The notes under the pieces were generated by a model that had not been told where the DNA came from, did no database searches, and was given only the letters and a program-made list of their open reading frames with translations. From the IMG/VR virus record IMGVR_UViG_3300031951_000001, positions 186,001 through 250,000 of that record: DNA of 64,000 bases; one strand, given 5' to 3'. The position numbers were made by a program, and so were the translations under genes. How positions within the stretch are numbered: position 1 is the stretch's first letter; every line of letters starts with the position of its first letter. This document shows positions 2-21,813 of the stretch, in pieces.

Positions 2-964
2 CACGAATGCGGAGACTTGATGCTACTTTCAGAACTTACTTTTAAGTTTGGTCACAAGTTTTTAAATCCATATGAACAATTCAAAGCTTATACCTATAAA
101 GAAGTCGAACAACCTCAAGAAACTTTAACTGAAAATATTACAGTTGTTGTTAATCAAGAAGTTGTTGAAGAGGTAGTACCTGAAAAAATATACGACGGTA
201 ATTACAGGCATAAGTTGAACATGTTAATTACTTGTCACACTAGAGAGGATTATATTCCTCACCTAATTCAAATTATCGAGTCATATAAAAAGATTGATGT
301 AAATTATGCGATTTGTTATAATGGATATGATGATAATTTTAATTGTCATTTTAGAACAGTATACCAACCAAATAATGGAAGAGGTGATGACGGTCATCAA
401 CACGGATGTCCTTATGCCGAAGCTGATTTAGATTTATTATTAGGAGGATATGATTATCTTAAAGACAATGGAGCTCATTTGTGGGTCAAACTGTCGGCCG
501 ATAGCTGGATGCTTGATGAGGATAAAATTATTCAAATTTTGGATGAATTGGAAAAAACTGATTGTGCGTATGCGGGAAACTTTTGGTATGAATACAAAAA
601 TATGTCAACTGACGTTTTCTTCTCAAGTACAAAGGTGAATAATATTTTTGAAGAATTTAAGAAACATAAAACCGAATATTTTGACCAAATATATGAAGTT
701 AAAAGTATGCAAGGGTTAGAAATGTATGTTGGTTTTATAAGTAGAATTTATGATAGACTTATCATTGAAAATCGAGAACCAATGCAAGCGGACTCTACAA
801 GATGGGGGGTACAATCTTTGGGATGGACAATGAGCCATGCGATAGGTAATAATTTGAATTTTGTACAAAATTATGTACCTGATAATGGAAAGGTTACATT
901 TAGAATAGAGAAAGGTCATGGTAATCCTTTCAGCGTAGAAGAAAATAAAATAAACATTTGGTAA
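2..964 (+). CDS. Glycosyltransferase-like protein (5'-truncated by window edge)
   Basis: The frame is open from base 2 (HECGDLMLL...). It has a GT-A-like pattern (MLITCHTREDY...WVKLSADSWMLD) and lies 4 nt upstream of a glycosyltransferase fusion gene. Confidence 0.5.
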   Translation, partial: HECGDLMLLSELTFKFGHKFLNPYEQFKAYTYKEVEQPQETLTENITVVVNQEVVEEVVPEKIYDGNYRHKLNMLITCHTREDYIPHLIQIIESYKKIDVNYAICYNGYDDNFNCHFRTVYQPNNGRGDDGHQHGCPYAEADLDLLLGGYDYLKDNGAHLWVKLSADSWMLDEDKIIQILDELEKTDCAYAGNFWYEYKNMSTDVFFSSTKVNNIFEEFKKHKTEYFDQIYEVKSMQGLEMYVGFISRIYDRLIIENREPMQADSTRWGVQSLGWTMSHAIGNNLNFVQNYVPDNGKVTFRIEKGHGNPFSVEENKINIW

Positions 965-968
965 AAAT

Positions 969-3341
969 ATGTTAGAAACAATATTAAATTTTCACAACAA
1001 TCAAGTTGACCCAATTATTATAAACAGAGAACAAGTTGGGTGTTTAGTCACTAATTTGATAGACATCATTGAGAAAAATGTCGAAGGTGACGTAGTAGAA
1101 TTAGGATGTTATGTAGGAGAGTCATCAAAATATTTGATGAAAACTCTTGTAGAATATAATTCAACAAAAAAATTATTCGTATATGACTCATTTGATGGGT
1201 TACCTGAACTTACAAAATGGGAAGAGTCATCAGGATGGCAACCAGGTACTCTTAAAACTACCGAAGAAGTTTTAATTGGTAACTTTAAAAATAATAATCT
1301 TCCTCTTCCTATAATTCATAAGGATTGGTTCAAGGATATTCCTGATTACAAAATTCCTGAAAAAATATCTTTCGCCTTTTTAGACGGTGATTTTTATAAC
1401 TCAATTTATGATAGTTTGACCAAAATTTACGATAAGGTAAGTGATGGGGGATATATTTTCTTTCATGATTTTATGAGAGCTGATTTACCTGGTGTTGATG
1501 CTGCGGTAAGAGACTTTTTATCTGAAAGAGGTTTGAAATATAACGTTGTTGAAATATGTGAGCAGGTTGGTATGATGATTAAAACAGGAGAGAGAATTGA
1601 AGAAGTTGCCGCCACTCCTGAAGAAGTTGTGATTGAAACTGAACAACCTGTTGAAAATTATACATCAAATAAAATCGTAACTTTGGTTACAGGTCTTTGG
1701 GAGATTGGTAGAGAAAATCTTGAAAATGGATGGTCTAGAAGTTTTGAGCATTATATCGAAAAATTTGTACAGCTTTTAAAGACTGAAGATAACATGATTG
1801 TCTTTGGTGATATTGAATTACAAAAAATAGTTTTCGAACATAGAACACAAAAAAATACACAATTCATAGTTAGGGATTTAAGTTGGTTTAAAAGAAACGA
1901 TTATTTTGAAAAAATTCAAAAGATAAGAACCAACCCAAAATGGTATAATCAGGTAGGGTGGCTTACCGAATCAACTCAAGCTAAATTAGAGATGTATAAT
2001 CCTTTAGTAATGTCTAAAGTCTTCTTACTCAATGATGCAAAAATATTAGATAAATTTAATTCAGATTATCTATTTTGGATTGATGCGGGTTTAACTAATA
2101 CTGTACACGCCGGTTATTTTACACACGATAAAGTAATAAAAAAACTTCCTGATTTAATTAAAGATTTTCATTTTGTTTGTTTTCCATATGAAGCAAATTC
2201 AGAAATTCATGGTTTCGATTATGAAGAAATGAAAAAATATTGTGATGGAGCTAAAGTTAATAAAGTTGCAAGAGCTGGTTTCTTTGGTGGTAAAAAAGAT
2301 ACAATCGGTCAAATAAACGCAATCTATTATAGTTTATTGAATGAGACTTTAGATAGAGGTTTCATGGGTACTGAGGAGAGTTTATTTACAATTTTAGTTT
2401 ACAAATATCCCGAATTGGTTGGTTTTTCCGAAATCGACGAAAGTGGATTGATGGGTAAATTTTTTGAGGAATTAAAAAATTCTGAAATAAAAGTAAAATC
2501 TGAAAAAGTTAATCAGTTGAGTGATTTGGACGTAAGTAAAACCGCTCTATATGTTTTAACTTTTAATAGTCCGAAACAATTTGAAACTTTGATTGACTCG
2601 ATGTTATTGTATGACGCGGACTTCATACATAAACCAATGAAATTCTTGATTGACAACTCTACAGATAGTTCTACGTTCGAAAGATATACTGAACTTTGTG
2701 AGAGATATAATTTTGAGCATATCAAGAAAGAAAACTTAGGAATTTGTGGAGGTCGTCAGTTTATCGCCGAACACTTTGAAGCAACTGGATATGATTACTA
2801 TCTATTCTTCGAGGATGATATGTTTTTCTACACAGGAAACGAAAGTACATGTAGGAATGGTTTCCCTAGACAATTGAAGAGTTTATACGAGAAAACATTG
2901 AGAATTATAAATAAGGAAAATTTTGACTTCTTGAAATTTAATTTTTCGGAATTTTACGGAGATAATTCAACTCAATGGTCTTGGTATAATGTACCTCAAA
3001 ATGTAAGAGAGCAATATTGGCCTCATTATTCAAAATTACCTCAAATGGGTACCGACCCAAATGCTCCAAGAGCGCAATACGATAATGTAAAATCATATGA
3101 CGGTGTACCATATGTAACAGGTGAAGTATATTATTGTAATTGGCCTCAAATAGTATCAAGAGACGGTAATAAGAAAATGTTCCTCACCGATAAGTGGGCT
3201 CATCCGTATGAACAAACATGGATGAGTTATATGTACCAAGAATTGAAAAAGGGTAAACTCAGGCCGGCTTTATTATTGGCTAGCCCAACAGAACATAACA
3301 GGTTTGAGCATTACGACGGGTCGTTAAGAAAAGAAAGTTAA
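969..3341 (+). CDS. Three-domain glycan-modifying enzyme: TylF/MycF-type O-methyltransferase + HtrL/YibB-like domain + GT-A glycosyltransferase-like domain
   Basis: TylF motifs: GDVVELGCYVGES, VYDSFDGLP, AFLDGDFYNS, GGYIFFHDF. HtrL-like motifs: TLVTGLWEIGR, RSFEHY, FWIDAG, GFFGG. C-terminal GT-like motifs: LIDNS, NLGICGGR, YLFFEDD. Confidence 0.75.
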   Translation: MLETILNFHNNQVDPIIINREQVGCLVTNLIDIIEKNVEGDVVELGCYVGESSKYLMKTLVEYNSTKKLFVYDSFDGLPELTKWEESSGWQPGTLKTTEEVLIGNFKNNNLPLPIIHKDWFKDIPDYKIPEKISFAFLDGDFYNSIYDSLTKIYDKVSDGGYIFFHDFMRADLPGVDAAVRDFLSERGLKYNVVEICEQVGMMIKTGERIEEVAATPEEVVIETEQPVENYTSNKIVTLVTGLWEIGRENLENGWSRSFEHYIEKFVQLLKTEDNMIVFGDIELQKIVFEHRTQKNTQFIVRDLSWFKRNDYFEKIQKIRTNPKWYNQVGWLTESTQAKLEMYNPLVMSKVFLLNDAKILDKFNSDYLFWIDAGLTNTVHAGYFTHDKVIKKLPDLIKDFHFVCFPYEANSEIHGFDYEEMKKYCDGAKVNKVARAGFFGGKKDTIGQINAIYYSLLNETLDRGFMGTEESLFTILVYKYPELVGFSEIDESGLMGKFFEELKNSEIKVKSEKVNQLSDLDVSKTALYVLTFNSPKQFETLIDSMLLYDADFIHKPMKFLIDNSTDSSTFERYTELCERYNFEHIKKENLGICGGRQFIAEHFEATGYDYYLFFEDDMFFYTGNESTCRNGFPRQLKSLYEKTLRIINKENFDFLKFNFSEFYGDNSTQWSWYNVPQNVREQYWPHYSKLPQMGTDPNAPRAQYDNVKSYDGVPYVTGEVYYCNWPQIVSRDGNKKMFLTDKWAHPYEQTWMSYMYQELKKGKLRPALLLASPTEHNRFEHYDGSLRKES

Positions 3342-3366
3342 TTTTCTGAATTTTAATAACTCGTAG

Positions 3367-3374
3367 TATTTATA
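3367..3374 (+). promoter_or_regulatory. TATTTATA putative late promoter
   Basis: Exact motif 16 nt before ATG 3391; the same motif recurs before most structural genes. Confidence 0.6.
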
Positions 3375-3390
3375 ATCAAATAAGTTTTTG

Positions 3391-6300
3391 ATGGAGTTTG
3401 TAATCAGGAAAAATGCCACTTTACCACTGCTGAAAATGCAGATAGTTAAAGATGGTAGGGGTACGTATGAGGATTTTATGAATTTTATAGAGACCTCGAC
3501 TATCTATTTTTCGATGCAAAATTCTGAAACTGGTGTTATGAAAATTAACACCAAATTTGCAGGCTATGTTGAGAAGGAATTTATTGAGCCAAACTCTCCT
3601 CCCGAATATTACATTTATTATAAATTTACCAAAAGAGAAACAAACAAAGTTGGTAAATATGAAGGTCAATTCCTTTTAAAGAATGAAATAGGTACTTTAG
3701 TTCTTCCGATACGAGAAAAACTAAACATCACAATTAAAGATTCAAATTTAGAAGATGATTTAGACTATAATGAATGTTTTGTAGGACAATTCCAATGCTG
3801 TGTAATAGGACCTCCAGGTCCAAATACTCCATATGAATTTGAACTTAATGCTAACTATTCACCCGGCTCCGTTATTGCCGATTATACTCTAACCGCGAGT
3901 AAACCTGTCGATGCGACTACTACGGTATTATTTGAAAATATTTTAGTAACTTATACAGGTGAATCAATTACAATATCTACAGGAATTACAATAAATAGAG
4001 GTCAGACCACATCCTCGGTTGAAGTTGTAACTGATGGTGATTTTAGTAATTTAACACTGGCAAATTATTTTGATAATGTTTTAATTACACCTTCTACAAG
4101 TTTAACCCCAGATTCTATAGATATTAAACAATCATTTCCTCCATCAGTTCTTACAGGAGATTGTTATTGTTATAGATTTATTAATACTCAAGGTAAACCT
4201 GCAAAATTAAGATATACCCATTGTAATGGTACACCAGTCGAAACATCAATTTCACCAAATGGTAGTTACCAAGACTGTATTCAAACCAACCAATATAATG
4301 TATCAAGTGGAGTTATTGCCGGTGTGAGTCAGGAATGTTTCGGTCCTAATTATTTATGTTTTACGGCTGGTACTCCTTGTAAATGCTACAGGTACAACTA
4401 TATAGGTAATGGTGCTCAAATAGGTCAGATAAGGTATGTCGATTGTCAAAATAATACAATATCTGATAATTCAACTGATTCTGTTGTTGAGTTGTGTGTT
4501 TCTGAAAGACTTGGTGAAAAATATTATACTCATACTGAATTAGATGCGACTTGTACCACCGAAGCTGATTGTTCTTTTTGTTGTTCGGCGTCTCATAATT
4601 TAGTACTTACAACTGGAATATCCGGTGAAATAGACGAAAATGTTACAAAATTATATCGTTATAACACTCTAACCGGTAATCAAACTCTCATTTTAACAAT
4701 AGACCCTGTTTCATCACCCCCATATCAAGCTTTGGATGTTGCCCATAAATTTAGTCCTATCACTAATAATGGTAAAATTTGGATAAGTTTTAAAGGGTTA
4801 AATTCTGATAATTTACCGGACCAATATATTGAAGAGTATGACATTGATTCATCATATAACGTCCAATATAACCGTAGAATTAATATACCGTGGCTCAATG
4901 GATTACGAGAAATTGGTCACGGGTTGAGTCTTTACAATGAAAATAATTTAATTTTAACATTATGTCTTTTTGGGGTAAACGAAGAATTTGTACTTCTAAA
5001 TATAAATAATACAGGTGATATTCCTGATGCGAACTTGATACCTACCGGTATTTACTCACCATTCGAACCCACACAATTACCAAATACTCTTGATTCTGAA
5101 GGTAGAGTTAACAAAATTGTTGATATATTAATTACTTCTGACTCTAAAATAGTTGCGACTAATTACGGAATTTTGGCGAATGGGGCGGTCAATACAATAC
5201 TTCAAATTGATATAACGACTAACGATTATGAAACATTTTTTTATTGGCCAGATGTAAATAATTATGTTCAAAATTCATACCAAGGAATATTTGAAAGTTG
5301 TGGGACATTTTATTGTTTTACATATTCTGAAAATTTTAATGAGTTATGGAGTGTGGATACCGAAACTTATGAGTTAAATCAAGTTCAACCATATAATTCA
5401 AATTTACGAGTTGTGGTCGGGTGTTCATCATTATTGGTTTGCCAAACTCAAAGTTTTGTTCCTGACACTCCTTGTGCTCCTGATGCCGAGGGATGTAATA
5501 TCGCTATTACGGGTACTGTTCATAATGTATCATTTACTTATGAATACACTGGAGACGTGGTGGTGTATTCACCTCAAGATAATACAGAAGATAGTTTTAT
5601 TTGTTATGAAGATTGTATAAACGTTTATAACATCGAAGCTCTATTTTGTGGACACGGTGATGGCACCCCAACACCTGGAAATCCGTCAACCCACTTTACT
5701 GTAACATTTAATTTTGCTTCAGAAGTTAATGATGTTAGAATTGTAATATGGGGTTCAGGATGGGGAGGAAATGAAAATTTTCATATAATGACTGACCAAG
5801 GAGTCCCAACAATAACTTCATATTATAGTTGTTATAGTGAGATTATTGGTAACACAATTTATTCGGGGGCCGAACCATATCCACCTTATAAAGGTGGGGG
5901 TATTTTTAATGTAAATTCTAATAATGATTTTACATCGATTGTAATCAGTGGTGATGGCGGATGGGCTGGGTCATTTATTTATTTGTGTACAGATAGCTCT
6001 TTATGTTTTGATAATTGTACACCAATTCTATTGAGTCCTTTAGCACAAATAACTTTATATAATGGAACAAATCAATATTCAATAACTTTACCATACATAA
6101 ATGGAGGCCCATTTCCTAATCCAGGGACGAGTTATAATTACAACGCAATTGCTCATACCCCTAACAAATTGTGGATATCTAATTTCCTTTTCACAAGTGA
6201 CCCAACCAACTGGTATTTGTTAGAGTGGGATTTATCTCTGTGTCCATTTTCTGTAACGTACAATACAAGATATGTCCAAAGTGTTGATAGTGGAGTAACA

Positions 6301-9300
6301 TCCATAAGATTTGGAGAGAGTAGTAGTCCTGGACTTTTTGCCTTGAACGATACAACTTTATTGACCTCAATCAGAATTAACCAAAACAGTCCTCAGGAAA
6401 AAATAGTAATAGTTTCATTATCATCACCATTAATGACTGTTGTTGATTTATATTCATTACCAGGACAACAAGCGGTTTCGGGGGATATAATAGCAACTAA
6501 CAATTTTAATTTATTAGTTTCTACGGTAGATAATACGAACACATATAGATTATTACAATTAGATTTTATAACCGGTAATTTAGAAATAGAAGTACTATAT
6601 AATATAGGAGGAGCAAATATACGAGGTTTGTTCGAATACCAAGGTAACTTGTTCGCAACAACATCCAATGGATTATATCAGATAAACCCTAATTACCCCT
6701 ACCAATTTACCCAAGTTAACGCTACTACAACAAACCAAGATTCATCATCATCTATTTTATTTTGTAACCCAACTTATTTGTTACCACCACCAACACAAAC
6801 ACCGACTCCGACTCAAACACAAACGAATACCCCATCTAGATTACCTTTGGGTGAATTATGTAGATGTCATTATATAACTAACTATGAGAACAAACCTATC
6901 ACATTTACAGCAACAACTTGTGATTCTTCAATACCCCAAACTTATACGCTACCCGCTAATACAAGTTATCCTCCATCATGCTTCAAATTAGGTTCAGTAT
7001 ATAGTTTTAATGCTCAAGTAACAATCACATATTCTATAACACCTTGTGTATTTTGTAATGGTAAATATGTTTGTAACTCCGTATTGTGTCCTACACCTAC
7101 ACCAACTCCTACTAAAACTAGTACACCTACACCAACGTCACCATGTCAACCTCCCCAAGTTGGGGTTCAAACTTTTACCCAAGCTTGGTCAGTAAATAAC
7201 ACCTGTGTTGCCGCAGAGTTAGGTTATTATTTATTTACAACCGGTACAACTGAAGAGGCATGTCAGTCATTTGTTGGGTTCGCTGAAACTCCAGAAGGAA
7301 GTCAATATTGCCCTTCTTTAGGTACTAACACAATAACTCCATCAACCCAACAAAAAACTTTTGGTGTTTATCCTTATCCTGTAGAGATAGGAAGTAGACT
7401 TTATTCTACAGTCCCAACGTCATGTAACTGTCCATCTTTTTGGTTTAATGGGTGGGGCGGTCCTAATAATGACCCTGGCGCTCCTTTTTTGTTTCTTTCT
7501 AATGGCCCATATAAAGCTTGGTATAATGACGGGGTCATTGTAAACGGTGATAATACGTCTGTAAAAATAGCCACGATATCAGGATGTACCGTGATTGATA
7601 TAGAAATTTGTGAAGTGGTGGGATTCAATGTAAATATAATTGCGTCACCAGGTTCTGTCGATATGATATATAACTTTACGTCAACTCAACCTGTTAAATC
7701 CGCAGTTACTATTAATTTTACAAACATACTTCAAACATATACCGGAGACTCAATCTTTATCACCACAGGACTTACTTTAAATAGTGGTGAAACATCAACA
7801 TTTGTAACAGTTTCAAGAGATGTCGATTTTGATAATCTTACCTTAGGTTATTCTACTATAGATTTTTCAGTGACCTCTAATTTATACATTAATCCTGAAT
7901 TAATATATTTTAATTTCTCAATACCAACAATACCAACACCATCAAACAAATGTTACTGCTATGAATTAACAAACACGAGAACAGATGTAACCGCAATAGT
8001 CAAATATAGAACTTGCGAGAATGAAATAATTACAGATTATTTGAGCCCCCTTGAAACAATAAATGATTGTATAAGATTTAATTCAATTTCAGCTAGCTCA
8101 ATAGTCGATATTACTCAAATATCAGTTTGCGGTCCTCCTGATTATAGTTGCGTAACACCAAATGTACCATGTTATTGTTATAAATTAACTTATGATAATT
8201 CAGGTTATTTAGGTGCGATTCATTATATTGATTGTGCGGGTGAAAATCAAAGTATAACAAATACAACTCAATCATTATATGAAATTTGTGCCAGAGAAAT
8301 AACCGGAACTTTTAAATACAAGGCAGACCAATTAGGGGAATGTACCTCAACCACTCAATGTTCTCAATGTTGTACAACCAGTAAAGTTTTAGTTTTAACA
8401 AATGATTTCCCGAATGGTTCTCCTGGACCTACAGGGGTGGCCATCTATAACCCATCGAATGGTACATCAACTTTGATGAGTTTAACTTTAACAGGGTTAC
8501 CATATTCTCTTACTCACATTTACGATAACACCACAAACACAGGAAGAATGTGGATTGCTTTTGATGCCCCTGTACGTATAGAAGAATACACGCTTGACGC
8601 AAACTACAATCCTTCTTTTGATAGATATATTTTCATATCAGGAAATGAGTTTGAGATTGGAGAGTCGATAACTTATCTAAATTCAAATACTTTATTAAGT
8701 ACTAGACGGGGAACAAACCCAAGAAGAGTTGTTACAATAGATATATCTACACCAAATATTGACATCACCGTACCTCTAGTTAATACAATTTACACTATAC
8801 CATTAATTACTACTAATGCCGACGACATTACAAGTTTATTAGTGACCACTAATAATAGACTTATTGGTACTAGATATAGTGGAACATATACACAGAACGG
8901 TAGTTCAAATACAATTTTCCAAATTGACATGAACACAAATCAGCTCGAATATTTGGCGACATGGCCTGATGTTCCTTGGGAAGGCTGGTGGGACGGGATA
9001 TTCATAAACTGTAACAAATATTATAGGTTTGTTAATAATCAAGTTTCATTAAATCAATTATGGACATCCTCAACAAATTCTAATGGTATACCTACATATA
9101 GTTTAGTATTTAATAACAATAATTCATTATCAAACATATGGGACACATCTTCAAACCCTATTTGTAACACTTTTAATTTTAACCCTAACCAAATTTTATT
9201 AACACCCACACCTACTTTAACCCCAACAATAACTAAAACACCTACTAAAACACCTACCCCTACCGTAACCAAAACAAAAACTCCAACAGTTACTCCAACA

Positions 9301-14505: not shown

Positions 14506-14555
14506 TTATATAATTACAATGTCTAAATCTTTACTTATTAAAACGTTTACCAAAG

Positions 14556-14563
14556 TATTTATA
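14556..14563 (+). promoter_or_regulatory. TATTTATA putative late promoter
   Basis: Exact motif 15 nt before ATG 14579. Confidence 0.6.
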
Positions 14564-14578
14564 GAATAAAATCTTTGG

Positions 14579-17500
14579 ATGGAATTTTTCATTAAAAAAG
14601 GCGCGACCCTTCCTTTATTAAAACTTAACATTGTTGACAATGGAAGAAGCGATTATAACAACTTTCTAAATACGTTAGAGTTGTCATCTTTATTCTTTTC
14701 AATGACTAATGTTGAAAACGGTACCCCAAAGATAACAAACAAACCTGCAGGTGTTGGCGGCGAATACCCAAACTATTTTATATACTATCAGTTTCAAAAT
14801 ACCGACACAACAAAAGAGGGTAGATTTGAGGGTGAGTTTGTTATAAAAAATGAGTACGGTAATAATGTTTTAACATTAGGTGAAAAACTTTATGTTAACA
14901 TAACCGAGTCATTTATATTAGATGATTTAGATTACGTTTCATGTTACATAGTTGATTATGCTTGTTGCAGTAATCCTATACCAGTGCCATTACCTCAACC
15001 TTCAAGTACTCCTACTCCTACACCTACTGTAACTGACTCTCAATTATCTCTAACTCTACAAGGATTTATAAATCCAGGGTCAGTTGTTATAGATTATGTT
15101 CTAACATCAAATAGATTATTTTCACAGGAACTTACAATGTCGTTCTCAAATTTACTTGGGGTGATTGTTGGAAGTCCTGTATTAATAACAACCGGTGTAA
15201 CTTTGAGTGTTGGTGAATTTACGGGAACTACCCAAGTAATTCTTCCTGATGATTTTCAAAATTTAAATCGTGAAAGTTTATTTTTTGGTAATACCATAAA
15301 TCTTACAGGTTTAACGTATACGACTTACTATCAAAATTCAGTATTCTTTGCAACACCAACACCCACCCCAACTCCAACACCAACTGAAACAATTGTTTGT
15401 GAATGTTTTGAAATTGTTGCTCCATTAGCGAATGGTTCATATTCTTATATCGATTGTAGTGGAATTGAACAACCAGTTGTTGAATTAGGTATAGGTGAAT
15501 CTTCTAGAGTTTGTGTAGGTAATTCTAAAATAAACGCGTTTGACGGAGCCGAATTCTATGTTGTTGGATTATGTTCAGACTGTCTATTACCGACCCCTAC
15601 CCCCACCCCAACTCAAACTGAGGGTGAGATTTTTATGGGTAATATAATAGAAAATATTAACCTTAATGAAACTTTTACAACGAATGAAGAAGAATTAAAT
15701 AGGATTTTACGCGAAAGACCTAAAAAATTAAATATTGATTTACCATTTAAAGATGGGGTCATAAATGTTAATCTAACTAGACGAAATATTTACGAAAATG
15801 ATTTTAGAATATCAAATGAATTCGGAGAGACACTTTATTCAAAATTAGGAGAACATTATGAAGGTATTATTGTTGGTAGTCAAAATTCTACAGTTTCTTT
15901 AAGCATTACAAGCGAAGGGTTCAGTGGGTCCTTACAAGATGAAGGATTAGTTGTTGATATTAATAACATCAGTGGATTTACTCATCACTGCCAAGAAGTA
16001 TTTGAGGAAACTAAACATGATTGTAATACATACAATATTGATTTTCCCGAATTAGATAACTACATCTCCCCAAACCAAGAAATGTTTAATAACTTTGAGG
16101 GTGAGATTATGGCTAACATTAATTTTGAGAATTTGAATTCTTACGTTACCATGGTTGCCAACAAAAACGTGAGGTATCTCTTGGAGGTTGATTACGATAT
16201 ATATCAATATTTTGGTAATGATTTACAGGCAACTACTAATTACATCACCGCGTTATTTAATTCTATATCCGCTATCCATGCCGCTGAAGGGGTGTCGATA
16301 ACAATGAGTGAGATTAAATTTTGGACTTCGGGCGAGTCTCCATATAGGACTTACGGTCATACAATACCATGCACCGCGAACACAAGTAATCTAGACTGCG
16401 CATTAAAAAATTATAGGCAATATTATAAAAATAATAATTTAACTTTCAATGGAGATGTTAGAATGTTGTTAACAGTCGGATGGCCCAATCCTGTTGGTGG
16501 TAGTGCTAGATATAGCTCGGCGTATACTCCGGGTGTGTGCTCCCCCGATTTTTATAATTGTCTTTTCCATCAGTTAAGACCAACAACTGTCAGTCCTGGT
16601 AGCCCACCTCCTGAAGGATATGTCGATGGAGGTAGTAATTTAAGTGTTTACTACGGAAATGCCAATGGGTGGAATGTAATTGCGGGTGCTCACGAAATTG
16701 GTCATACTCATGGATGTTCTCATACATTCAGTTCGGTTTGGAATTGTAACTACACAATAGGTAGCACAAATGTTGCGGGTACATGTTGTTTAGATTGTTG
16801 TTCAGGTCTTGCAAATTGCGCTTGCGTTGGCGGTACAACTATACAAAACCCAACTAACGGTACATGTATAGCGTCAGGTGCGACAATTATGTCTTATAAT
16901 ACAAGACAACCTATATTCGGACCTCAACCACAACAGAAAATGGTCAATACGATAAATGCGGCACTTTGTTTACAAAATTTTACTACACCAACCCCTACAC
17001 CAACCCCTACAAGAACAAGTACAACACCAACTCCAACTCCTACAAGAAACACACCAACTCCAACTAAAACAAGTAATTGGGATTGTGCTGCGTCTTTCAA
17101 TATAAATATTCCAAATACAACCTCAGTAACTATAAGTGGAGTAACATTCGTAAAGTCGGTATCTCAAGTGATGTCAACTCAAAGTTTTGCGATTATACCT
17201 TCGTCATGCATAGGTTCAAGTAATATTAGTGGAGTTAACATATTAACTTCTCTAACTGATACTTCGGGTAACTACACCATGAGTTCCTCGACTTTATTGA
17301 CAAGTATCGCATTATCGTTTGGGGCTTTACAAGCAACTGATGTGATTACGTTTAGTGCAAATAATGGTACTACGTTTGTCGGAATTTGCCAAGGGTGTTG
17401 TGGTCAAAATGGCGCCGCCAATCAAATTGTTGGTACAACTTTATGTAGCCAGCTCGGAAACGTAGATGGAGGTGCATTCCGAGTCATTGTTAATTCAACA

Positions 17501-18820
17501 GAACCGTTCAATCAACTAAATGTAAAAATAAGCAGTCCTTTAAATAACGGGTGGGGTAAGTTTTTAAAAATTAATAATTTTAGAACTTTAGGAACCTCAA
17601 TCACCCCAACTAAAACACCAACAAGAACTGCAACACCAACAGTTACAAAAACCGCCAATTTTGTTGACGTAACTCCAACATCGACACCTACTGTAACGTT
17701 GACTAAAACCCTTACATCCACCCCAACAAGAACATTAACACCTACAAGGACATCCACTCAAACCCCAACAGTAAGTAAAACAAGTAATTTAATTGTTGAA
17801 AGTCCGACCTCTACCCCAACAAGAACATTAACACCTACTCCGACAAGAACCCTCACACCAACTAAATCAACTAATATTACATTAACCCTCACACCAACGA
17901 GAACAAAAACCCCTACTCCGACTAAATCGTCTAATACATCATTAACACCTACTCCGACAAGAACAAAAACCCCAACACCGACAAGAACAAAAACCCCAAC
18001 ACCGACTAAATCGTCTAATACATCATTAACCCCAACACCGACAAGAACAAAAACCCCAACACCGAGTACTTCAATATCGATTTCATTGTGTGATATTTTA
18101 AGTGTTGCAAATACAACGGGTATTATATACAAATATGATTACGTATCGAATACTGTTACCGAATTGCCGGTCAGCGGTAGACAAGTATTACCGAGTGATA
18201 TTGCCGTTTCAGAAAATTATTTATTTACGATATCTTCTAACACTATTAGAAGGTTCCAAATAACTAGAAACCCATGGACCGCAACTAACCCAACCGATTT
18301 CATATATCCGTCAGGTACATTCGCAACAAGTAACAACGGTTTATTTGCATTGAGCGACTCAACACTTATATCATTTAACACTTTAAATCAAATTATATCT
18401 GTTAATTTAACCAATTTGACAACAACAGTTTTATTTAGTTTACCTGCGGGTAGGTCAATTGCGGGAGATATAATATACACAACAAACAATAGATATATAA
18501 TTGTCAACCGAAGTATATCCACATCTACCACATTTGTTTCTCAATTTGATTCATCGGGTAACCCAATGGGTGAAATGAGTATGGCAAGTATTACATTAGT
18601 TAACGGAAGTTTATTTATTTATAATAGTGAATTATATATTCAAAGGCAGTCCACCCCTCCACATAATTATAAATTAACATTCCCATCAACAATAAGTCCT
18701 GTGTTAAGTACCGCCACAGTAACATCACTAGGATTTGCTCAACCACAAAACTGTATAAGTTTTGATTTTCCTGTTTCACCAACACCTACTAAAACAGTCA
18801 CCCCGACAAAAATACTATAG
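14579..18820 (+). CDS. Modular virion fibre-like protein with an M12/reprolysin-like zinc metalloprotease domain
   Basis: HEIGHTHGCSH (HExxHxxGxxH, 16691-16723), Met-turn IMSY (16886-16897) and reprolysin-like EVDYDIY segment. It shares the N-terminal domain with 3391..14505 and has PT linkers and a C-terminal propeller. Confidence 0.75.
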   Translation: MEFFIKKGATLPLLKLNIVDNGRSDYNNFLNTLELSSLFFSMTNVENGTPKITNKPAGVGGEYPNYFIYYQFQNTDTTKEGRFEGEFVIKNEYGNNVLTLGEKLYVNITESFILDDLDYVSCYIVDYACCSNPIPVPLPQPSSTPTPTPTVTDSQLSLTLQGFINPGSVVIDYVLTSNRLFSQELTMSFSNLLGVIVGSPVLITTGVTLSVGEFTGTTQVILPDDFQNLNRESLFFGNTINLTGLTYTTYYQNSVFFATPTPTPTPTPTETIVCECFEIVAPLANGSYSYIDCSGIEQPVVELGIGESSRVCVGNSKINAFDGAEFYVVGLCSDCLLPTPTPTPTQTEGEIFMGNIIENINLNETFTTNEEELNRILRERPKKLNIDLPFKDGVINVNLTRRNIYENDFRISNEFGETLYSKLGEHYEGIIVGSQNSTVSLSITSEGFSGSLQDEGLVVDINNISGFTHHCQEVFEETKHDCNTYNIDFPELDNYISPNQEMFNNFEGEIMANINFENLNSYVTMVANKNVRYLLEVDYDIYQYFGNDLQATTNYITALFNSISAIHAAEGVSITMSEIKFWTSGESPYRTYGHTIPCTANTSNLDCALKNYRQYYKNNNLTFNGDVRMLLTVGWPNPVGGSARYSSAYTPGVCSPDFYNCLFHQLRPTTVSPGSPPPEGYVDGGSNLSVYYGNANGWNVIAGAHEIGHTHGCSHTFSSVWNCNYTIGSTNVAGTCCLDCCSGLANCACVGGTTIQNPTNGTCIASGATIMSYNTRQPIFGPQPQQKMVNTINAALCLQNFTTPTPTPTPTRTSTTPTPTPTRNTPTPTKTSNWDCAASFNINIPNTTSVTISGVTFVKSVSQVMSTQSFAIIPSSCIGSSNISGVNILTSLTDTSGNYTMSSSTLLTSIALSFGALQATDVITFSANNGTTFVGICQGCCGQNGAANQIVGTTLCSQLGNVDGGAFRVIVNSTEPFNQLNVKISSPLNNGWGKFLKINNFRTLGTSITPTKTPTRTATPTVTKTANFVDVTPTSTPTVTLTKTLTSTPTRTLTPTRTSTQTPTVSKTSNLIVESPTSTPTRTLTPTPTRTLTPTKSTNITLTLTPTRTKTPTPTKSSNTSLTPTPTRTKTPTPTRTKTPTPTKSSNTSLTPTPTRTKTPTPSTSISISLCDILSVANTTGIIYKYDYVSNTVTELPVSGRQVLPSDIAVSENYLFTISSNTIRRFQITRNPWTATNPTDFIYPSGTFATSNNGLFALSDSTLISFNTLNQIISVNLTNLTTTVLFSLPAGRSIAGDIIYTTNNRYIIVNRSISTSTTFVSQFDSSGNPMGEMSMASITLVNGSLFIYNSELYIQRQSTPPHNYKLTFPSTISPVLSTATVTSLGFAQPQNCISFDFPVSPTPTKTVTPTKIL
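17810..18065 (+). repeat. Imperfect nested tandem repeats (TPTPTRTK / TPTKSSNTSL units)
   Basis: Repeated ccgacaagaacaaaaaccccaaca and actaaatcgtctaatacatcattaac units. Confidence 0.8.
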
Positions 18821-18852
18821 AATTAAATTAAAAAGATAATTATATTAAAAAC

Positions 18853-21729
18853 ATGTTGCAAATTATAACCATAGAAAGTGTCCATTTTGATGGTGAAATT
18901 GCGCAAATTTTATTCCAACCGTTTAATTCCGAACAAATAATTAATTTAGGTTCGGTAACATTACCTTATACATATGAACCCCCTATCGGTGTCGAAATAT
19001 ATGGTACTTACACGATATTGACACAGGAAGACCCGAGCTGCCCTTATTACATTACCGCACCTTATCCCACACCTACTAACACCCCAACTATATCTTTAAC
19101 AAAATCACAGACACCGACACCATCAATTACAAGCTCACCAACTTTAAGTTTAGACCCATGTAAAATACCATTAACACCCTCATCAACAGTTGAGCCAACT
19201 CCGACAAATTCAATAAAACCAACAAGAACTCCAACACCTACTAATAGTAAAATACCTTGTAGTCCTGACCCAACTCCGTCAAATACTCCAACTCCTAGTA
19301 TAACAAGAACTAACAAGCCAACTAGAACTCCGACCAAGACTCCAACTAAAACACCTACCAGTACTCCTTCTAATACCCCAACTATTAGTGTCACATCATC
19401 CAACACTCCTTCTAATACACCCACAAAAACAATTACAAAAACTCCAAGTTCAACAGTAACAAAAACACCAACCAATACCCCAACAAAAACAACCCAACCA
19501 ATTGCCCCAACAAAAACCCCAACTAAATCTGTTACACCTACAATCACAAACACAAAAACCAATACCCCGTCAATAACTCCTACTAAAACACCAGCATCAA
19601 CGACAACTCCTACAAAAACTATAGAACCAACCGCAACTCCACAGTCAATTGCGTCTTGTAATGATACGGTAAATATTAGAAATGGTAGTAGTGGTACTTA
19701 CACGTATGAAGTAGAATTTGGAAATGATACAGGACCGATTAAATTAAATTATAACGCGGTATCGGTACCTGATAGATTTACTGTAGTATGGGATGGAATT
19801 GAAGTGATAAATACAGGATTTGTTGGTTCTCCGACTTACGATTCACAATTAAATGCTCTTGGTTACCCTGGTGTTAGTGGTCCGGGTCGAGGTGTCGCCG
19901 CGTTCACCAAATCGTCCTCAACCCCAACTAGTGCATTTATAACAATATTAGCACCACTCCCCGGTACTGCATGGGATTTTAGTTTCTCATGTCCCGTACC
20001 TCCACCAACTCAAGCCCCTACCAAAACACCTACTTCAACTCGAGGAGCAACACCGACACCAACAAAAACATCCACTCCTACCAATACTTCTCAAGCGGCC
20101 CCACCACCTACTAAAACTCCAACTAAAACTTCAACACCAACAATGACAAGAACTCCGACAAATACACCAATAGGTCAGACACCAACAATGACAAGAACTC
20201 CGACAATGACTAAAACCCCAACGGTTACGCCTACATATACTTCGAGCGTAAATTGTTTCTGCTATAGAGTATTAACTAACCCAGGTATTGCTGTTGGTAG
20301 TTTATTTTACTACGACTGTTACACATCTCAATATGAGGAATCTCAAGTCTTATCGTCTAATACCACCACAACAATATGTGTACAATCTGGTTTCCAAATC
20401 TTTGAGAGTGGAGCGTATCCTGTATTAGTCGGTAATTGTTATGGTGGGCAGTGCATTCCTCTTACATCCACACCTACAACCACTAAAACTCCAACTAAAA
20501 CAATTGCACCATCTAGAACTCCGTCACACACTCCAACTAAAACCCCAACTCAAACTAGTTCTGATATTAATTTATCTTTGGGAGCAATATTCGGACCTGG
20601 CTCAACTATTATTGATTATGTATTGAGTGCTAGTAGAGTTTTATCTGAAACAATAACACTTTCATTCACAAATACTATTGGTGTAATAGTTGGTTCACCA
20701 ATTCAAGTTATCACGGGTGTAACAATAACTTCAGGTATGACTAGTGGGGTTACTCGAGTTACATTGGTTAACGATTTTTATAATCTATCCAAAATAAATT
20801 CATATTCAGGAATAACTTTAAACGGAAGCGGAGGAACATTTAATTACAACATAACTGAAACATCCATTTTCCCAACTAATACTCCAACACTAACTAAAAC
20901 ACCAACTAATACGCCAACCGTTACTACAACAAGAACTCCCGCCGCAACCCCAACAAAAACAATTCCACCTACTCAAACTCAATTCCCTGGACCAACGTCT
21001 ACTCCAACACAAACCCCAACTTTAACAGTTACAAAAACTATACCTCCAACTAAAACCCCAACTAGAACAGTAACTCCTACTTTAAGTATTAGTCCAACTA
21101 TAACTAAAACACCAACAGTAACAAGAACAAATACACCAACACCAACTAATACCGTAAGTATAACCCCTACAATAAGTAATACACCGTCTATTACACCTAC
21201 AATAACCGACACCCCAACAAATACACCTTCTATAACCCCTACTAAAACATCAACACCTTCAAATACACCAACAAAAACTAGTACCCCAACAAATACGCCA
21301 ACAAAAACTAGTACCCCAACAAATACGCCAACATTAAGTATAACACCAACAATAAGTAATACACCGACAATTACACCAACACCGGATTTATATCCTCCAA
21401 TAATTAATGGTGTTGATGTAACAATTACAATTACAGGTACTTCGGTTCAAATAGTTAATACGAATTTCATATATAATCGTATTTGGGTTTGGGATGGTCC
21501 GACTAATAACGCCGGTGATTTCCTTAATGAGATTGCACCTGGAGGAGGAATAGGAGATTGGCTTCCATTATCATTATTCACAACAGGTAAGATTGGTTTG
21601 TCTTATGTTGCACCTCCTACATACCAAACTTGTTATAGTATATACACGTTAGATATGGTAGATTGTTTGGCTCCATTACCAACTAGAACCCCAACAACCA
21701 CACCAACACCAACACCAAGTCCAATTTAA
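18853..21729 (+). CDS. Pro/Thr-rich (mucin-like) modular virion protein
   Basis: Much of the protein is TPT-type repeats. It has one Ig-like and one Cys-rich module shared with the two upstream genes and is preceded by the variant motif TAATTATA (18837-18844). Confidence 0.6.
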   Translation: MLQIITIESVHFDGEIAQILFQPFNSEQIINLGSVTLPYTYEPPIGVEIYGTYTILTQEDPSCPYYITAPYPTPTNTPTISLTKSQTPTPSITSSPTLSLDPCKIPLTPSSTVEPTPTNSIKPTRTPTPTNSKIPCSPDPTPSNTPTPSITRTNKPTRTPTKTPTKTPTSTPSNTPTISVTSSNTPSNTPTKTITKTPSSTVTKTPTNTPTKTTQPIAPTKTPTKSVTPTITNTKTNTPSITPTKTPASTTTPTKTIEPTATPQSIASCNDTVNIRNGSSGTYTYEVEFGNDTGPIKLNYNAVSVPDRFTVVWDGIEVINTGFVGSPTYDSQLNALGYPGVSGPGRGVAAFTKSSSTPTSAFITILAPLPGTAWDFSFSCPVPPPTQAPTKTPTSTRGATPTPTKTSTPTNTSQAAPPPTKTPTKTSTPTMTRTPTNTPIGQTPTMTRTPTMTKTPTVTPTYTSSVNCFCYRVLTNPGIAVGSLFYYDCYTSQYEESQVLSSNTTTTICVQSGFQIFESGAYPVLVGNCYGGQCIPLTSTPTTTKTPTKTIAPSRTPSHTPTKTPTQTSSDINLSLGAIFGPGSTIIDYVLSASRVLSETITLSFTNTIGVIVGSPIQVITGVTITSGMTSGVTRVTLVNDFYNLSKINSYSGITLNGSGGTFNYNITETSIFPTNTPTLTKTPTNTPTVTTTRTPAATPTKTIPPTQTQFPGPTSTPTQTPTLTVTKTIPPTKTPTRTVTPTLSISPTITKTPTVTRTNTPTPTNTVSITPTISNTPSITPTITDTPTNTPSITPTKTSTPSNTPTKTSTPTNTPTKTSTPTNTPTLSITPTISNTPTITPTPDLYPPIINGVDVTITITGTSVQIVNTNFIYNRIWVWDGPTNNAGDFLNEIAPGGGIGDWLPLSLFTTGKIGLSYVAPPTYQTCYSIYTLDMVDCLAPLPTRTPTTTPTPTPSPI
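21268..21333 (+). repeat. Perfect 30-bp tandem repeat (2.2 copies) in a PT linker
   Basis: acaaaaactagtaccccaacaaatacgcca repeated exactly. Confidence 0.9.
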
Positions 21730-21732
21730 CAT

Positions 21733-21761
21733 TTGACAACCTAACCTTCAATATTTATAAT
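21733..21761 (+). promoter_or_regulatory. Consensus sigma70-type promoter TTGACA-N17-TATAAT, overlapped by a TATTTATA motif
   Basis: TTGACA 21733-38, 17-nt spacer, TATAAT 21756-61; TATTTATA at 21752-59; directly upstream of the polymerase gene. Confidence 0.8.
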
Positions 21762-21813
21762 TGATATAAAGGTAAATGTCGTAATTTCGCGGCAGCCAAT
21801 AAACCAATCAATT

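Follow-up and report, generated by a model that had tools for sequence, protein, structure and literature searches.

A predicted O-glycosylation gene module set among Pro/Thr-rich fibre-like proteins in a jumbo phage from lakes

Several viruses glycosylate their own proteins. Mycobacteriophage Che8 and related cluster F1 phages reportedly encode glycosyltransferases (GTs) that act in the bacterial cytoplasm on the phage's own structural proteins, namely the C-terminal regions of the major capsid and tail tube subunits, and give a glycan coat (Freeman et al. 2023, as cited in PMC11256854 and PMC12619734). Among giant viruses, GT clusters include sugar methyltransferases: in Mimivirus the fibril protein gene lies in the same cluster as the GTs, polysaccharides are attached to the fibrils and the product is called a glycocalyx, while chlorovirus PBCV-1 makes N-linked glycans on its capsid protein, using A064R, a three-domain GT-GT-methyltransferase, and A061L, which adds a second methyl (PMC9614988). 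In eukaryotes, mucin-type O-glycosylation is initiated by GT27 polypeptide GalNAc-transferases, and the polypeptide alpha-GlcNAc-transferases (GT60) of Trypanosoma cruzi and Dictyostelium add alpha-GlcNAc to Thr of Thr/Pro-rich mucin peptides such as KPPTTTTTTTTKPP (PMC3769586). PF11397 corresponds to this GT60 family, whose enzymes transfer GlcNAc from UDP-GlcNAc to Thr or hydroxyproline of a polypeptide. Most of these eukaryotic enzymes are Golgi type II membrane proteins, and GT27 has a ricin-type lectin domain. Among the systems closest to the locus described here is that of the Xanthomonas jumbo phage XacN1, whose purified virions contain at least two Schiff-stained glycoprotein bands, attributed by the authors to phage GTs, with neither the bands, the acceptors nor the glycan identified (PMC5852040).

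We analysed a 64,000-nucleotide stretch (the window) of IMG/VR record IMGVR_UViG_3300031951_000001, positions 186,001 to 250,000. A preliminary description of its first 21,729 positions, made from the sequence alone, had noted glycosyltransferase and O-methyltransferase genes directly upstream of three giant proteins with long TPTxT tracts and no signal peptides, and had proposed that the phage decorates its own fibres with methylated O-glycans, giving extended, protease-resistant stalks that display adhesin and enzyme domains. We confirm what was observed there. Five co-oriented ORFs on the + strand are packed with gaps of 4-84 bp: A (2-964), B (969-3341), C (3391-14505), D (14579-18820) and E (18853-21729). 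Unitigs from four independent lake or freshwater runs tile 9000-14900 with no differences. TPT occurs 59, 46 and 60 times in C, D and E, against 5.0, 2.1 and 9.2 in shuffled sequences (shuffle maxima 11, 8 and 20), that is, 7-20 times above chance, and TPTxT occurs 129 times. No other window ORF of 150 aa or more has more than one short tract. There is no hydrophobic N-terminus in C, D or E and no TM-like segment in the enzymes; no signal peptide or TM segment is present in any enzyme or in C, D or E, which supports a cytoplasmic setting.

The phrase '18 kb of mucin-like virion proteins', however, overstates the case, and the virion location is an inference. The Pro/Thr (PT) tracts are 12-183 aa long, with 37% Thr, 22% Pro and 9% Ser, and total 1,223 of 6,075 residues, or about 20%: 11% of C, 20% of D and 54% of E. 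So only E is mucin-like as a whole, whereas C and D are multidomain proteins with PT linkers. Parts of the tracts are degenerate, short in-frame tandem DNA repeats with a period of 12-84 bp. The Pro/Thr linkers of bacterial and fungal cellulases, to which the tracts had been compared, have the same composition and the same role as spacers between globular modules, but those proteins are secreted and modified by the host's own extracytoplasmic machinery, whereas here there is no secretion signal and the enzymes are phage-encoded neighbours.

The enzymes, in turn, are more numerous than was first described, because the window cuts the cluster: it comprises four genes with at least seven predicted transferase domains, rather than two genes. 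ORF B (790 aa) carries a TylF/NovP-type sugar O-methyltransferase domain at 1044-1556 (residues 26-196; PF05711, E 1.9e-23, 83.5 bits against a cut-off of 23), similar to the solved enzymes NovP (2wk1, 7e-14) and MycF (1e-8), followed at 1677-2426 (residues 237-486) by an HtrL_YibB domain (PF09612, E 1.5e-16, 61.3 bits against a cut-off of 24.1), a glycosyltransferase-like family that itself has no defined activity. TylF/NovP/MycF enzymes methylate a hydroxyl of a sugar already attached to its aglycone, an activity inferred for B from the family only. The C-terminal domain, at about 2511-3338, is GT-A-like, has an FFEDDMFF (DxD-type) stretch and groups with GT2/HtrL-type phage proteins in a protein atlas. 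ORF B is predicted to have the same three activities as A064R, in the order MT-GT-GT, with a second MT in the neighbouring gene, although the hosts of those viruses are eukaryotic and no sequence relationship to them was shown beyond one atlas neighbour cluster dominated by Nucleocytoviricota. At least 595 stretches in IMG/VR encode relatives of B, most of which lack the methyltransferase domain. ORF A is cut by the window edge; its full 458-aa gene starts 413 bp before the window, at 8620-9996 of L001 (the locus as taken from the 322-kb source contig). It gave no Pfam, PHROG or PDB match, and is called a probable GT-A/GT2-like glycosyltransferase only on an atlas lead: a feature score of 0.95-0.96 to phage clusters named 'putative glycosyltransferase' or modelled as GT2-like, the structural neighbours of the top hit being GT2. 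Homologues of A occur in only a minority of related loci. Farther upstream, a 1,067-aa protein (L001:5420-8623) matches the solved sugar O-methyltransferases MycE (3ssm, 1e-11) and TylE (8ia9, 3e-8) and has a weak GT25 hit; its stand-alone equivalent in relatives matches GT25 at 1.3e-12.

The remaining gene, L001:4167-5414, matches PF11397 (GT60-type) at E 1e-70 (239.4 bits against a cut-off of 21), and all listed homologues carry PF11397. In its AF2 model (pLDDT 85) the protein adopts a predicted GT-A fold, and its top 26 PDB fold hits are all polypeptide GalNAc-transferases (human T1, T2, T4, T7, T10 and T12, fly PGANT9 and Toxoplasma T3; E 5e-11 to 1e-8), with generic GT-A enzymes coming only after these. 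The TM scores of the fold matches are, however, only 0.44-0.50. D92-S93-H94 is invariant in 16 homologues, and DxH is the Mn-binding motif of GT27. In contrast to the eukaryotic enzymes, the phage protein is predicted to be soluble, has a different, beta-rich C-terminal domain and would work in bacterial cytoplasm; no prokaryotic or viral PF11397 member is known to have a defined acceptor.

Glycosyltransferases of phages are textbook modifiers of DNA, and the cassette lies beside a family B DNA polymerase (PolB) and a helicase, which raises the alternative that it hypermodifies phage DNA (glycosylated hydroxymethyl-pyrimidines) to evade restriction and has nothing to do with the neighbouring proteins. 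Indeed, the C-terminal domain of B gave faint hits to TET-associated glycosyltransferase (TAGT, PF20691; 17.8 bits against a cut-off of 27.5, E 0.0033) and to phrog_842, a T-even DNA glucosyltransferase (E 7e-4), but both are below threshold. Five or more GT domains plus two sugar O-methyltransferases are far more than known DNA sugar modifications use, the PF11397 fold is closest to peptide-acting enzymes, and no hydroxymethylase, TET/JBP or similar gene was found among the window ORFs scanned. This reading also does not explain the association with PT tracts described below, and we consider it very unlikely.

We next examined the fibre-like proteins. ORF C (3,704 aa) consists of an N-terminal domain (3391-3765) and about 11 globular segments joined by 12 PT tracts (418 aa); the segments include Cys-rich modules, a repeated module of roughly 90 aa and propeller-like regions, and C has an internal duplication of about 550 aa but matches no Pfam family. 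ORF D (1,413 aa) starts with a paralogous N-domain (14579-14950), as shown by alignment, and has 9 PT tracts (285 aa) and a reprolysin-like metalloprotease domain at 16160-16906 (residues 528-776; Reprolysin_5, PF13688, E 1e-12, 49.2 bits against a cut-off of 27), in which HEIGHTHGCSH (16691-16723, residues 705-715) fits the zinc motif HExxHxxGxxH. The earlier suggestion of an enzyme domain on a stalk was right in this respect. ORF E (958 aa; 25% Thr, 14% Pro) lacks the N-domain and has eight PT tracts totalling 520 aa, the longest, of 183 aa, at 20854-21402, with small globular domains between them. The domain of E at 19645-19986 matches phrog_13374 and has relatives in 43 cultured phage records (Flavobacterium 31, Cellulophaga 8, Xylella 3, Xanthomonas 1).

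The N-domain of C is modelled by AF2 (pLDDT 88) as an Ig-like beta-sandwich, and in most relatives it is a free-standing 125-aa protein between the cassette and PolB. Its best PDB match, a weak one, is the phage NF5 baseplate chain (E 1.4e-3, TM 0.56), followed by antibody V domains; BFVD gave 83 hits at E of 1e-3 or better, including minor tail proteins, a BppU-domain protein, a neck passage structure protein and a baseplate component, whereas Pfam BppU_N (PF10651) gave no hit at E up to 10. Three tail-fibre-like Gly_rich_2 genes lie just upstream of the cassette, and the globular modules are mosaic and hypervariable, as in receptor-binding proteins. Alternatively, C, D and E may be glycosylated but not be virion parts, being released at lysis as free adhesins and a protease that act on host surfaces, biofilm or competing phages' receptors. 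E lacks the N-terminal anchor domain, D carries an apparently active metalloprotease, judging from its intact motif, and the genes lie outside the tail module at 31-52 kb and next to replication genes. However, the fold relatives of the N-domain of C and D and the tail-fibre-like genes flanking the cassette argue against this, and XacN1 packages a chitinase, a lipase and an M23 peptidase in its virions, so an enzyme domain does not argue against virion location. We regard release at lysis as improbable.

The preliminary description had set co-occurrence of the GT and PT-rich genes in related genomes as a test, and this was passed. Among 56 non-redundant related loci (PF11397 identity 61-100%), 50 have an ORF with at least 40 aa of PT tract within 6 kb upstream of the cassette or between it and PolB, and in 37 the ORF is within 300 bp on the same strand. 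PT-tract density is 61 aa/kb upstream and 26 aa/kb downstream of the cassette, 0 inside it and 0.1 aa/kb over 479 kb from PolB onward, i.e. about 600-fold and 260-fold higher upstream and downstream, respectively, than beyond PolB in the same loci. Neighbourhood within one clade is, however, partly inherited synteny rather than independent events. Six of the 56 cassettes, mostly one sublineage (loci L020-L025), have no PT-rich gene within 6 kb and no substantial PT tract anywhere in the flanks of up to 10 kb; so the cassette can persist away from such genes, or it has another acceptor. The TylF domain is present in only 17 of the 56 cassettes. Outside the clade, 8 of 119 viral loci picked only for a (TP)5T-coding pattern hold a PF11397-type gene, against 0 of 118 loci picked for (GS)5 (Fisher p 0.007); some of these genes are only 26-41% identical and sit next to the PT-rich ORF. 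The other 93% of the (TP)5T loci have no such gene in the stretch fetched, so PT tracts do not require it nearby.

These data also bear on a further alternative, in which the cassette makes or modifies a host-envelope glycan (LPS core, O-antigen or capsule), or glycosylates another phage protein such as the capsid, while the PT tracts are plain unglycosylated spacers, the two gene sets sitting together only because both belong to a fast-changing host-interaction island next to the replication genes. HtrL_YibB and GT25 are named for LPS biosynthesis, the automatic JGI name is 'glycosyltransferase involved in cell wall biosynthesis', and surveys of huge phages file their GTs under envelope functions by default. 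The six cassettes without adjacent PT genes, and the location of the cassette in XacN1-type phages by proteins with few PT tracts, are consistent with this view. Against it, the PF11397 enzyme is closest in fold to polypeptide, not lipid or polysaccharide, transferases, PT tracts are concentrated around the cassette, and the link between PT tracts and PF11397 recurs with distant homologues and fails for Gly-Ser linkers. No flippase, polymerase or undecaprenyl-phosphate priming transferase was seen in the stretches read. We consider this explanation unlikely, although it is the strongest of the alternatives.

XacN1 and its kin (Xoo-sp13 and Stenotrophomonas phages CM1 and RAS14) carry homologues of both ends of the cassette a few kb apart, near PolB and near baseplate and giant-protein genes; the PF11397 enzyme is 45-49% identical and the HtrL+GT-A protein 39-42% identical (in XacN1, ORF334 at 48% and ORF330 at 41%). 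In these phages, which have gammaproteobacterial hosts and roughly 50% GC genomes, a carbamoyltransferase sits in the cassette instead of methyltransferase domains, and PT-rich genes are few and not directly adjacent. In XacN1 only ORF334 and ORF328 had been recognised as GTs. XacN1 ORF350, beside head-completion and structural genes, has 248 aa of PT tract, but the baseplate-side giant protein has only about 55 aa.

Taken together, we favour the explanation (probability about 0.6) that this is a phage-encoded, cytoplasmic protein O-glycosylation module for virion appendages. In this view, during late infection the PF11397/GT60-type enzyme would put a first HexNAc on threonines of the PT tracts of the fibre-like proteins encoded on either side of the cassette, and the GT25-like domain of the 1,067-aa protein, ORF A and the HtrL and C-terminal domains of ORF B would extend the glycan. 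Two sugar O-methyltransferase domains, MycE/TylE-like in the 1,067-aa protein and TylF/MycF/NovP-like in ORF B, would cap sugar hydroxyls, and C and D would dock on the tail or baseplate through their N-terminal Ig-like domain, holding out variable binding modules and a metalloprotease on glycosylated PT spacers. Our analysis establishes the domain identities, the fold similarities, the conserved gene neighbourhood and the statistical link between PT tracts and PF11397-type genes, to which published work adds glycoprotein staining in a cultured relative. The catalytic activities of the PF11397 and TylF-type enzymes, the acceptor, the sugar, dense O-glycosylation of the tracts, methylation of this glycan, the virion location of C, D and E, and any stiffening or protease resistance of the stalks are inferred; no glycan, glycopeptide or transcript has been seen for this phage, and no public RNA run holds it. 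The preliminary interpretation is thus partly supported, its core idea, that the phage glycosylates its own PT-rich appendage proteins, having come out stronger than could be judged from the window alone. Self-glycosylation by viruses is already known; in the mycobacteriophages the acceptors are capsid and tail tube subunits, and the candidates at this locus are long internal PT tracts of fibre-like multidomain proteins.

The downstream edge of the module is probably marked by a sigma-70-type promoter match (TTGACA, 17 nt, TATAAT) at 21733-21761 (+), in the gap between E and PolB. It rests on consensus alone, but is the only 12/12 match in 2500-22400 and is the likely start of a separate transcription unit. 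No terminator-like site lies in any of the B-C, C-D, D-E or E-PolB gaps scanned. The PolB gene itself (21814-24642, +), identified by Pfam, is not part of the module, but follows the cassette and the N-domain gene in most relatives and served as the landmark for the comparisons above.

The region lies in the 322,372-bp viral contig IMGVR_UViG_3300031951_000001, in which window position 1 corresponds to about position 186,001. It comes from a contractile-tailed phage, since it encodes a tail sheath, gp19-like tube and T4 baseplate proteins, PolB, helicases, RecA/UvsX-like and SSB proteins and ribonucleotide reductase. No cultured phage is close, the best PolB match being 25% identical, although the same sequence occurs in many lake and freshwater metagenome runs from 2017 to 2024. 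Positions 2-21729 hold five co-oriented ORFs (A to E) separated by 4-84 bp. ORF B is a three-domain protein with a TylF/NovP/MycF-type sugar O-methyltransferase, an HtrL_YibB domain and a GT-A-like C-terminal domain. ORF A is cut by the window edge and has no family match; a language-model and structure atlas places it near phage GT2-like clusters, which is only a lead.

The preliminary description had claimed that glycan-enzyme genes precede 18 kb of mucin-like proteins rich in TPTxT tracts and devoid of signal peptides. Indeed, C (3,704 aa), D (1,413 aa) and E (958 aa) carry TPT 59, 46 and 60 times, against about 5, 2 and 9 in shuffled sequences, and no other sizeable ORF in the 64 kb has comparable tracts. 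The Pro/Thr (PT) tracts, which are partly short in-frame tandem repeats, cover 11%, 20% and 54% of C, D and E, and none of the proteins has a signal peptide or membrane segment. The observation was thus confirmed, except that most of the 18 kb encodes globular modules rather than mucin-like sequence. GC skew turns strongly negative, down to -0.32, over the genes for C, D and E (6000-22000); the likely cause is the C-rich ACN and CCN codons of the PT tracts, all on the + strand, rather than a replication signal.

Contigs from four independent runs (X1, X4, X10 and X12) tile positions 9000-14900 without a difference. One otherwise identical IMG/VR contig (L002) lacks 188 bp (window 11887-12074; at about 17010 of L002), which breaks the frame of ORF C. 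However, contigs of X1, X4 and X12 span this point intact and X10 shows no such joint, so we treat the deletion as an assembly or rare variant and not as evidence against the long ORF. Unitigs break at the PT-coding repeats, so the long-range order across the repeats rests on the IMG/VR assemblies.

The enzyme cluster proved to be larger than the preliminary description allowed. The 9 kb of the contig upstream of the window (L001) hold, in the same orientation, three paralogous Gly_rich_2 proteins, a 415-aa PF11397 protein (E 1e-70), a 1,067-aa protein with a MycE/TylE-like sugar O-methyltransferase domain (PDB 3ssm, 1e-11) and a GT25-like domain, and the start of ORF A. The three Gly_rich_2 proteins (L001:1479-4106), tandem and of about 290 aa, match PHROG tail-fibre, fibre-assembly and minor-tail families and occupy the place that PT-rich genes hold in most relatives. 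The enzyme block therefore spans four genes, with at least five predicted glycosyltransferase (GT) domains and two predicted sugar O-methyltransferase domains. The two methyltransferases are of the kinds (MycE/MycF and TylE/TylF) that act one after the other on one sugar in macrolide pathways.

To assess which enzyme might initiate glycosylation, we modelled the PF11397 protein with AlphaFold using 16 homologues (pLDDT 85). Its 26 best PDB fold matches are all polypeptide GalNAc-transferases, the enzymes that start mucin-type O-glycosylation, with E-values from 5e-11 to 1e-8, although TM scores were only 0.44 to 0.50; generic GT-A enzymes come only after these. Sequence searches of the PDB with the PF11397 protein and with ORF A found nothing; only the fold search was informative. 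A large homologue search for the PF11397 protein returned only close environmental relatives and no characterised enzyme. A D-S-H triplet is invariant and corresponds to the D-x-H metal site of that superfamily. PF11397 corresponds to CAZy GT60, whose characterised members add alpha-GlcNAc to Thr of Thr/Pro-rich mucins in Trypanosoma cruzi and Dictyostelium, or to hydroxyproline of Skp1 in the cytoplasm. The T. cruzi enzymology is described in PMC3769586.

We next examined whether the GT genes and PT-rich genes co-occur in related genomes, a test that had been proposed beforehand. ORF B has at least 595 relatives in IMG/VR, and the PF11397 protein has more than 7,000 homologues in the protein database. 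In most related loci the order downstream is cassette, a free-standing 125-aa protein, then PolB. This 125-aa protein is the N-terminal domain of C and D, so that C and D are that small protein with giant C-terminal additions. Considered alone, the downstream side suggested that the GTs vary independently of PT genes; this reading was rejected, because scanning both sides showed that in those relatives PT-rich multidomain genes lie immediately upstream of the PF11397 gene. A 1,522-aa PT-rich protein upstream of the cassette in one relative (L015:1063-5631) carries an RCC1-repeat beta-propeller (E 3e-55), another example of varied display modules on PT spacers.

Of 56 non-redundant loci with enough flank, 50 have an ORF with at least 40 aa of PT tract beside the cassette, and in 37 it is within 300 bp on the same strand. 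Tract density is 61 aa/kb upstream and 26 aa/kb downstream, but 0 in 399 kb of cassette and 0.1 aa/kb in 479 kb from PolB onward. Six loci lack adjacent PT genes, five of which belong to one sublineage with a rearranged context. In this sublineage (loci L020-L025 and L027) neither the N-domain gene nor PolB lies downstream and no PT-rich gene is adjacent; in L025 (3067-12346) eight extra ORFs lie between the PF11397 gene and the ORF B homologue. Since synteny within a clade is not independent evidence, we performed a converse test with 119 viral loci chosen only because they encode (TP)5T. Eight hold a PF11397-type gene, several only 26-41% identical and directly next to the PT-rich ORF, whereas none of 118 loci chosen for (GS)5 does (Fisher p 0.007). 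Most PT-tract loci (93%) have no such gene in the stretch examined, so the link is an enrichment, not a rule. An alternative, in which the cassette serves host-envelope glycan synthesis or another acceptor and the PT tracts are plain linkers, is possible but unlikely.

Cultured relatives gave further support. Xanthomonas phages XacN1 and Xoo-sp13 and Stenotrophomonas phages CM1 and RAS14 carry homologues of both cassette ends a few kb apart; in XacN1 these are ORF334 (PF11397) and ORF330. In the two Xanthomonas phages, the only ones whose regions we read, a carbamoyltransferase lies between them (XacN1 219791-222088; Xoo-sp13 223218-225515), where the present phage has methyltransferase domains, suggesting that the sugar-capping chemistry has been swapped between lineages. 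There the cassette sits near PolB and beside baseplate wedge genes and a protein of about 3,300 aa. At least two Schiff-stained glycoprotein bands, of unidentified proteins, were reported in purified XacN1 virions, and the authors suggested that the phage GTs make them (PMC5852040). XacN1 ORF350, next to head-completion and structural genes, has 248 aa of PT tract around a lectin-like domain.

That C, D and E are appendages is inferred. The N-domain shared by C and D (3391-3765 and 14579-14950) is predicted to fold as an Ig-like sandwich (pLDDT 88). Its best PDB match, a weak one, is a chain of the phage NF5 baseplate (E 1.4e-3), and its viral matches include minor tail proteins, a BppU-domain protein, a neck passage structure protein and a baseplate component, although Pfam BppU_N does not match. 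The free-standing 125-aa form, between the cassette and PolB in related loci (L005-L080), almost always ends in a conserved ...SFISETACC or ...PCC C-terminal Cys-Cys, and C and D keep a CC pair some 15-25 residues further on, which might act through a disulfide, metal or acylation. Apart from the N-domain (138 loci) and a roughly 90-aa module (11 loci), the globular modules are hardly shared between relatives, which is the pattern of receptor-binding proteins. Pfam searches with ten PT-free segments of C, D and E gave nothing usable, and PHROG searches gave only families of unknown function. D, however, carries a reprolysin-like protease domain with an intact zinc motif. The domain of E at residues 265-378 occurs in proteins of Flavobacterium, Cellulophaga, Xylella and Xanthomonas phages; the homologue in Flavobacterium phage FpV9 has no PT tract and lies among genes that are all annotated hypothetical, and so gave no functional context. 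The proteins are Cys-rich and lack export signals, which fits proteins assembled in the cytoplasm and used outside the cell. That they are glycosylated but released at lysis, rather than being virion parts, appears doubtful.

The idea of the preliminary description, that the phage decorates its own fibres with methylated O-glycans, is partly supported. In the best-supported reading (probability about 0.6), the PF11397 enzyme would start HexNAc on Thr of the PT tracts, the other GT-A domains would extend the glycan, and the two methyltransferases would cap sugars in this phage; the glycosylated spacers would hold out binding and enzyme modules from the tail. Only 17 of 56 cassettes have the TylF domain, and XacN1-type phages have a carbamoyltransferase instead. 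The domain and fold matches, the gene neighbourhood and the PT-tract enrichment come from our analysis, whereas the enzymatic activities, the acceptor, the glycan and its methylation, and the virion location are inferred, without any biochemical evidence for this phage. DNA hypermodification is a remote alternative, supported only by the position next to PolB and two sub-threshold hits.

Self-glycosylation of virus particles is known for mycobacteriophages, reportedly on capsid and tail-tube C-termini (Freeman et al. 2023, as described in papers citing it), for Mimivirus fibrils and for the chlorovirus capsid, including the three-domain GT-GT-methyltransferase A064R. What is new here is the pairing of a peptide-type, GT27/GT60-like predicted initiating enzyme with long PT tracts in fibre-like proteins of bacterial viruses, and its breadth in nature. 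Searches of the literature library for GT60 with phage, and for mucin-like O-glycosylation with phage fibres, found no description of it, and recent surveys of huge phages list their GTs as envelope-related or DNA-modifying by default. A bolder view, which we consider about as likely as not, is that an abundant clade of freshwater jumbo phages, and more distant viral lineages, run a cytoplasmic mucin-type O-glycosylation system. Here a soluble GT60/GT27-like polypeptide HexNAc-transferase would start glycans on PT tracts of hypervariable appendage proteins, and interchangeable tailoring enzymes (methyl- or carbamoyl-transferases) would diversify the coat. This would be the first mucin-type system in bacterial viruses, and a prokaryotic-virus branch of the enzyme lineage that starts mucin glycosylation in eukaryotes.

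Glycosylation of phage particles was long thought rare, being documented for a few mycobacteriophages and, for XacN1, only by a stain. If our reading is right, a recognisable module, a peptide-type initiating transferase plus PT-rich fibre genes, marks virion glycosylation in a very large environmental family, and the question becomes testable in phages already in culture (XacN1, Xoo-sp13, CM1 and RAS14). It would bear on how phage fibres resist proteases and recognise hosts, on the default annotation of huge-phage GTs as host-envelope or DNA-modifying genes, and on where the GT27/GT60 enzymes of eukaryotic mucin glycosylation come from. It also offers soluble, cytoplasmic O-glycosylation enzymes with simple peptide acceptors as possible tools.

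Sequence signals at the downstream edge fit one transcription unit for the module, separate from PolB. A 12/12 match to the sigma-70 consensus lies in the E-PolB gap (21733-21761), about 50 bp before the PolB start codon, and no terminator-like site was found in the gaps between B, C, D and E. These are consensus matches only, and no RNA run holds the phage. Such a promoter would be unexpected if the host were a member of the Bacteroidota, as predicted for the possibly related moraphages (freshwater, about 200-307 kb, four core GT families); indications of the host from the relatives of the E domain and from this promoter point in different directions.

Two further proteins of the window were noted. 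The tail sheath protein (31442-35011) is 1,189 aa long, yet only its last 300 aa or so match sheath families, and its first 890 residues have no sheath-family match. On the - strand, 26077-27618 encodes a 513-aa protein with a complete Fe/Mn superoxide dismutase (Sod_Fe_N and Sod_Fe_C, residues 37-226, E 1.9e-40) followed by about 290 aa with no family match, and a dismutase fused to such a domain is unusual in a phage.
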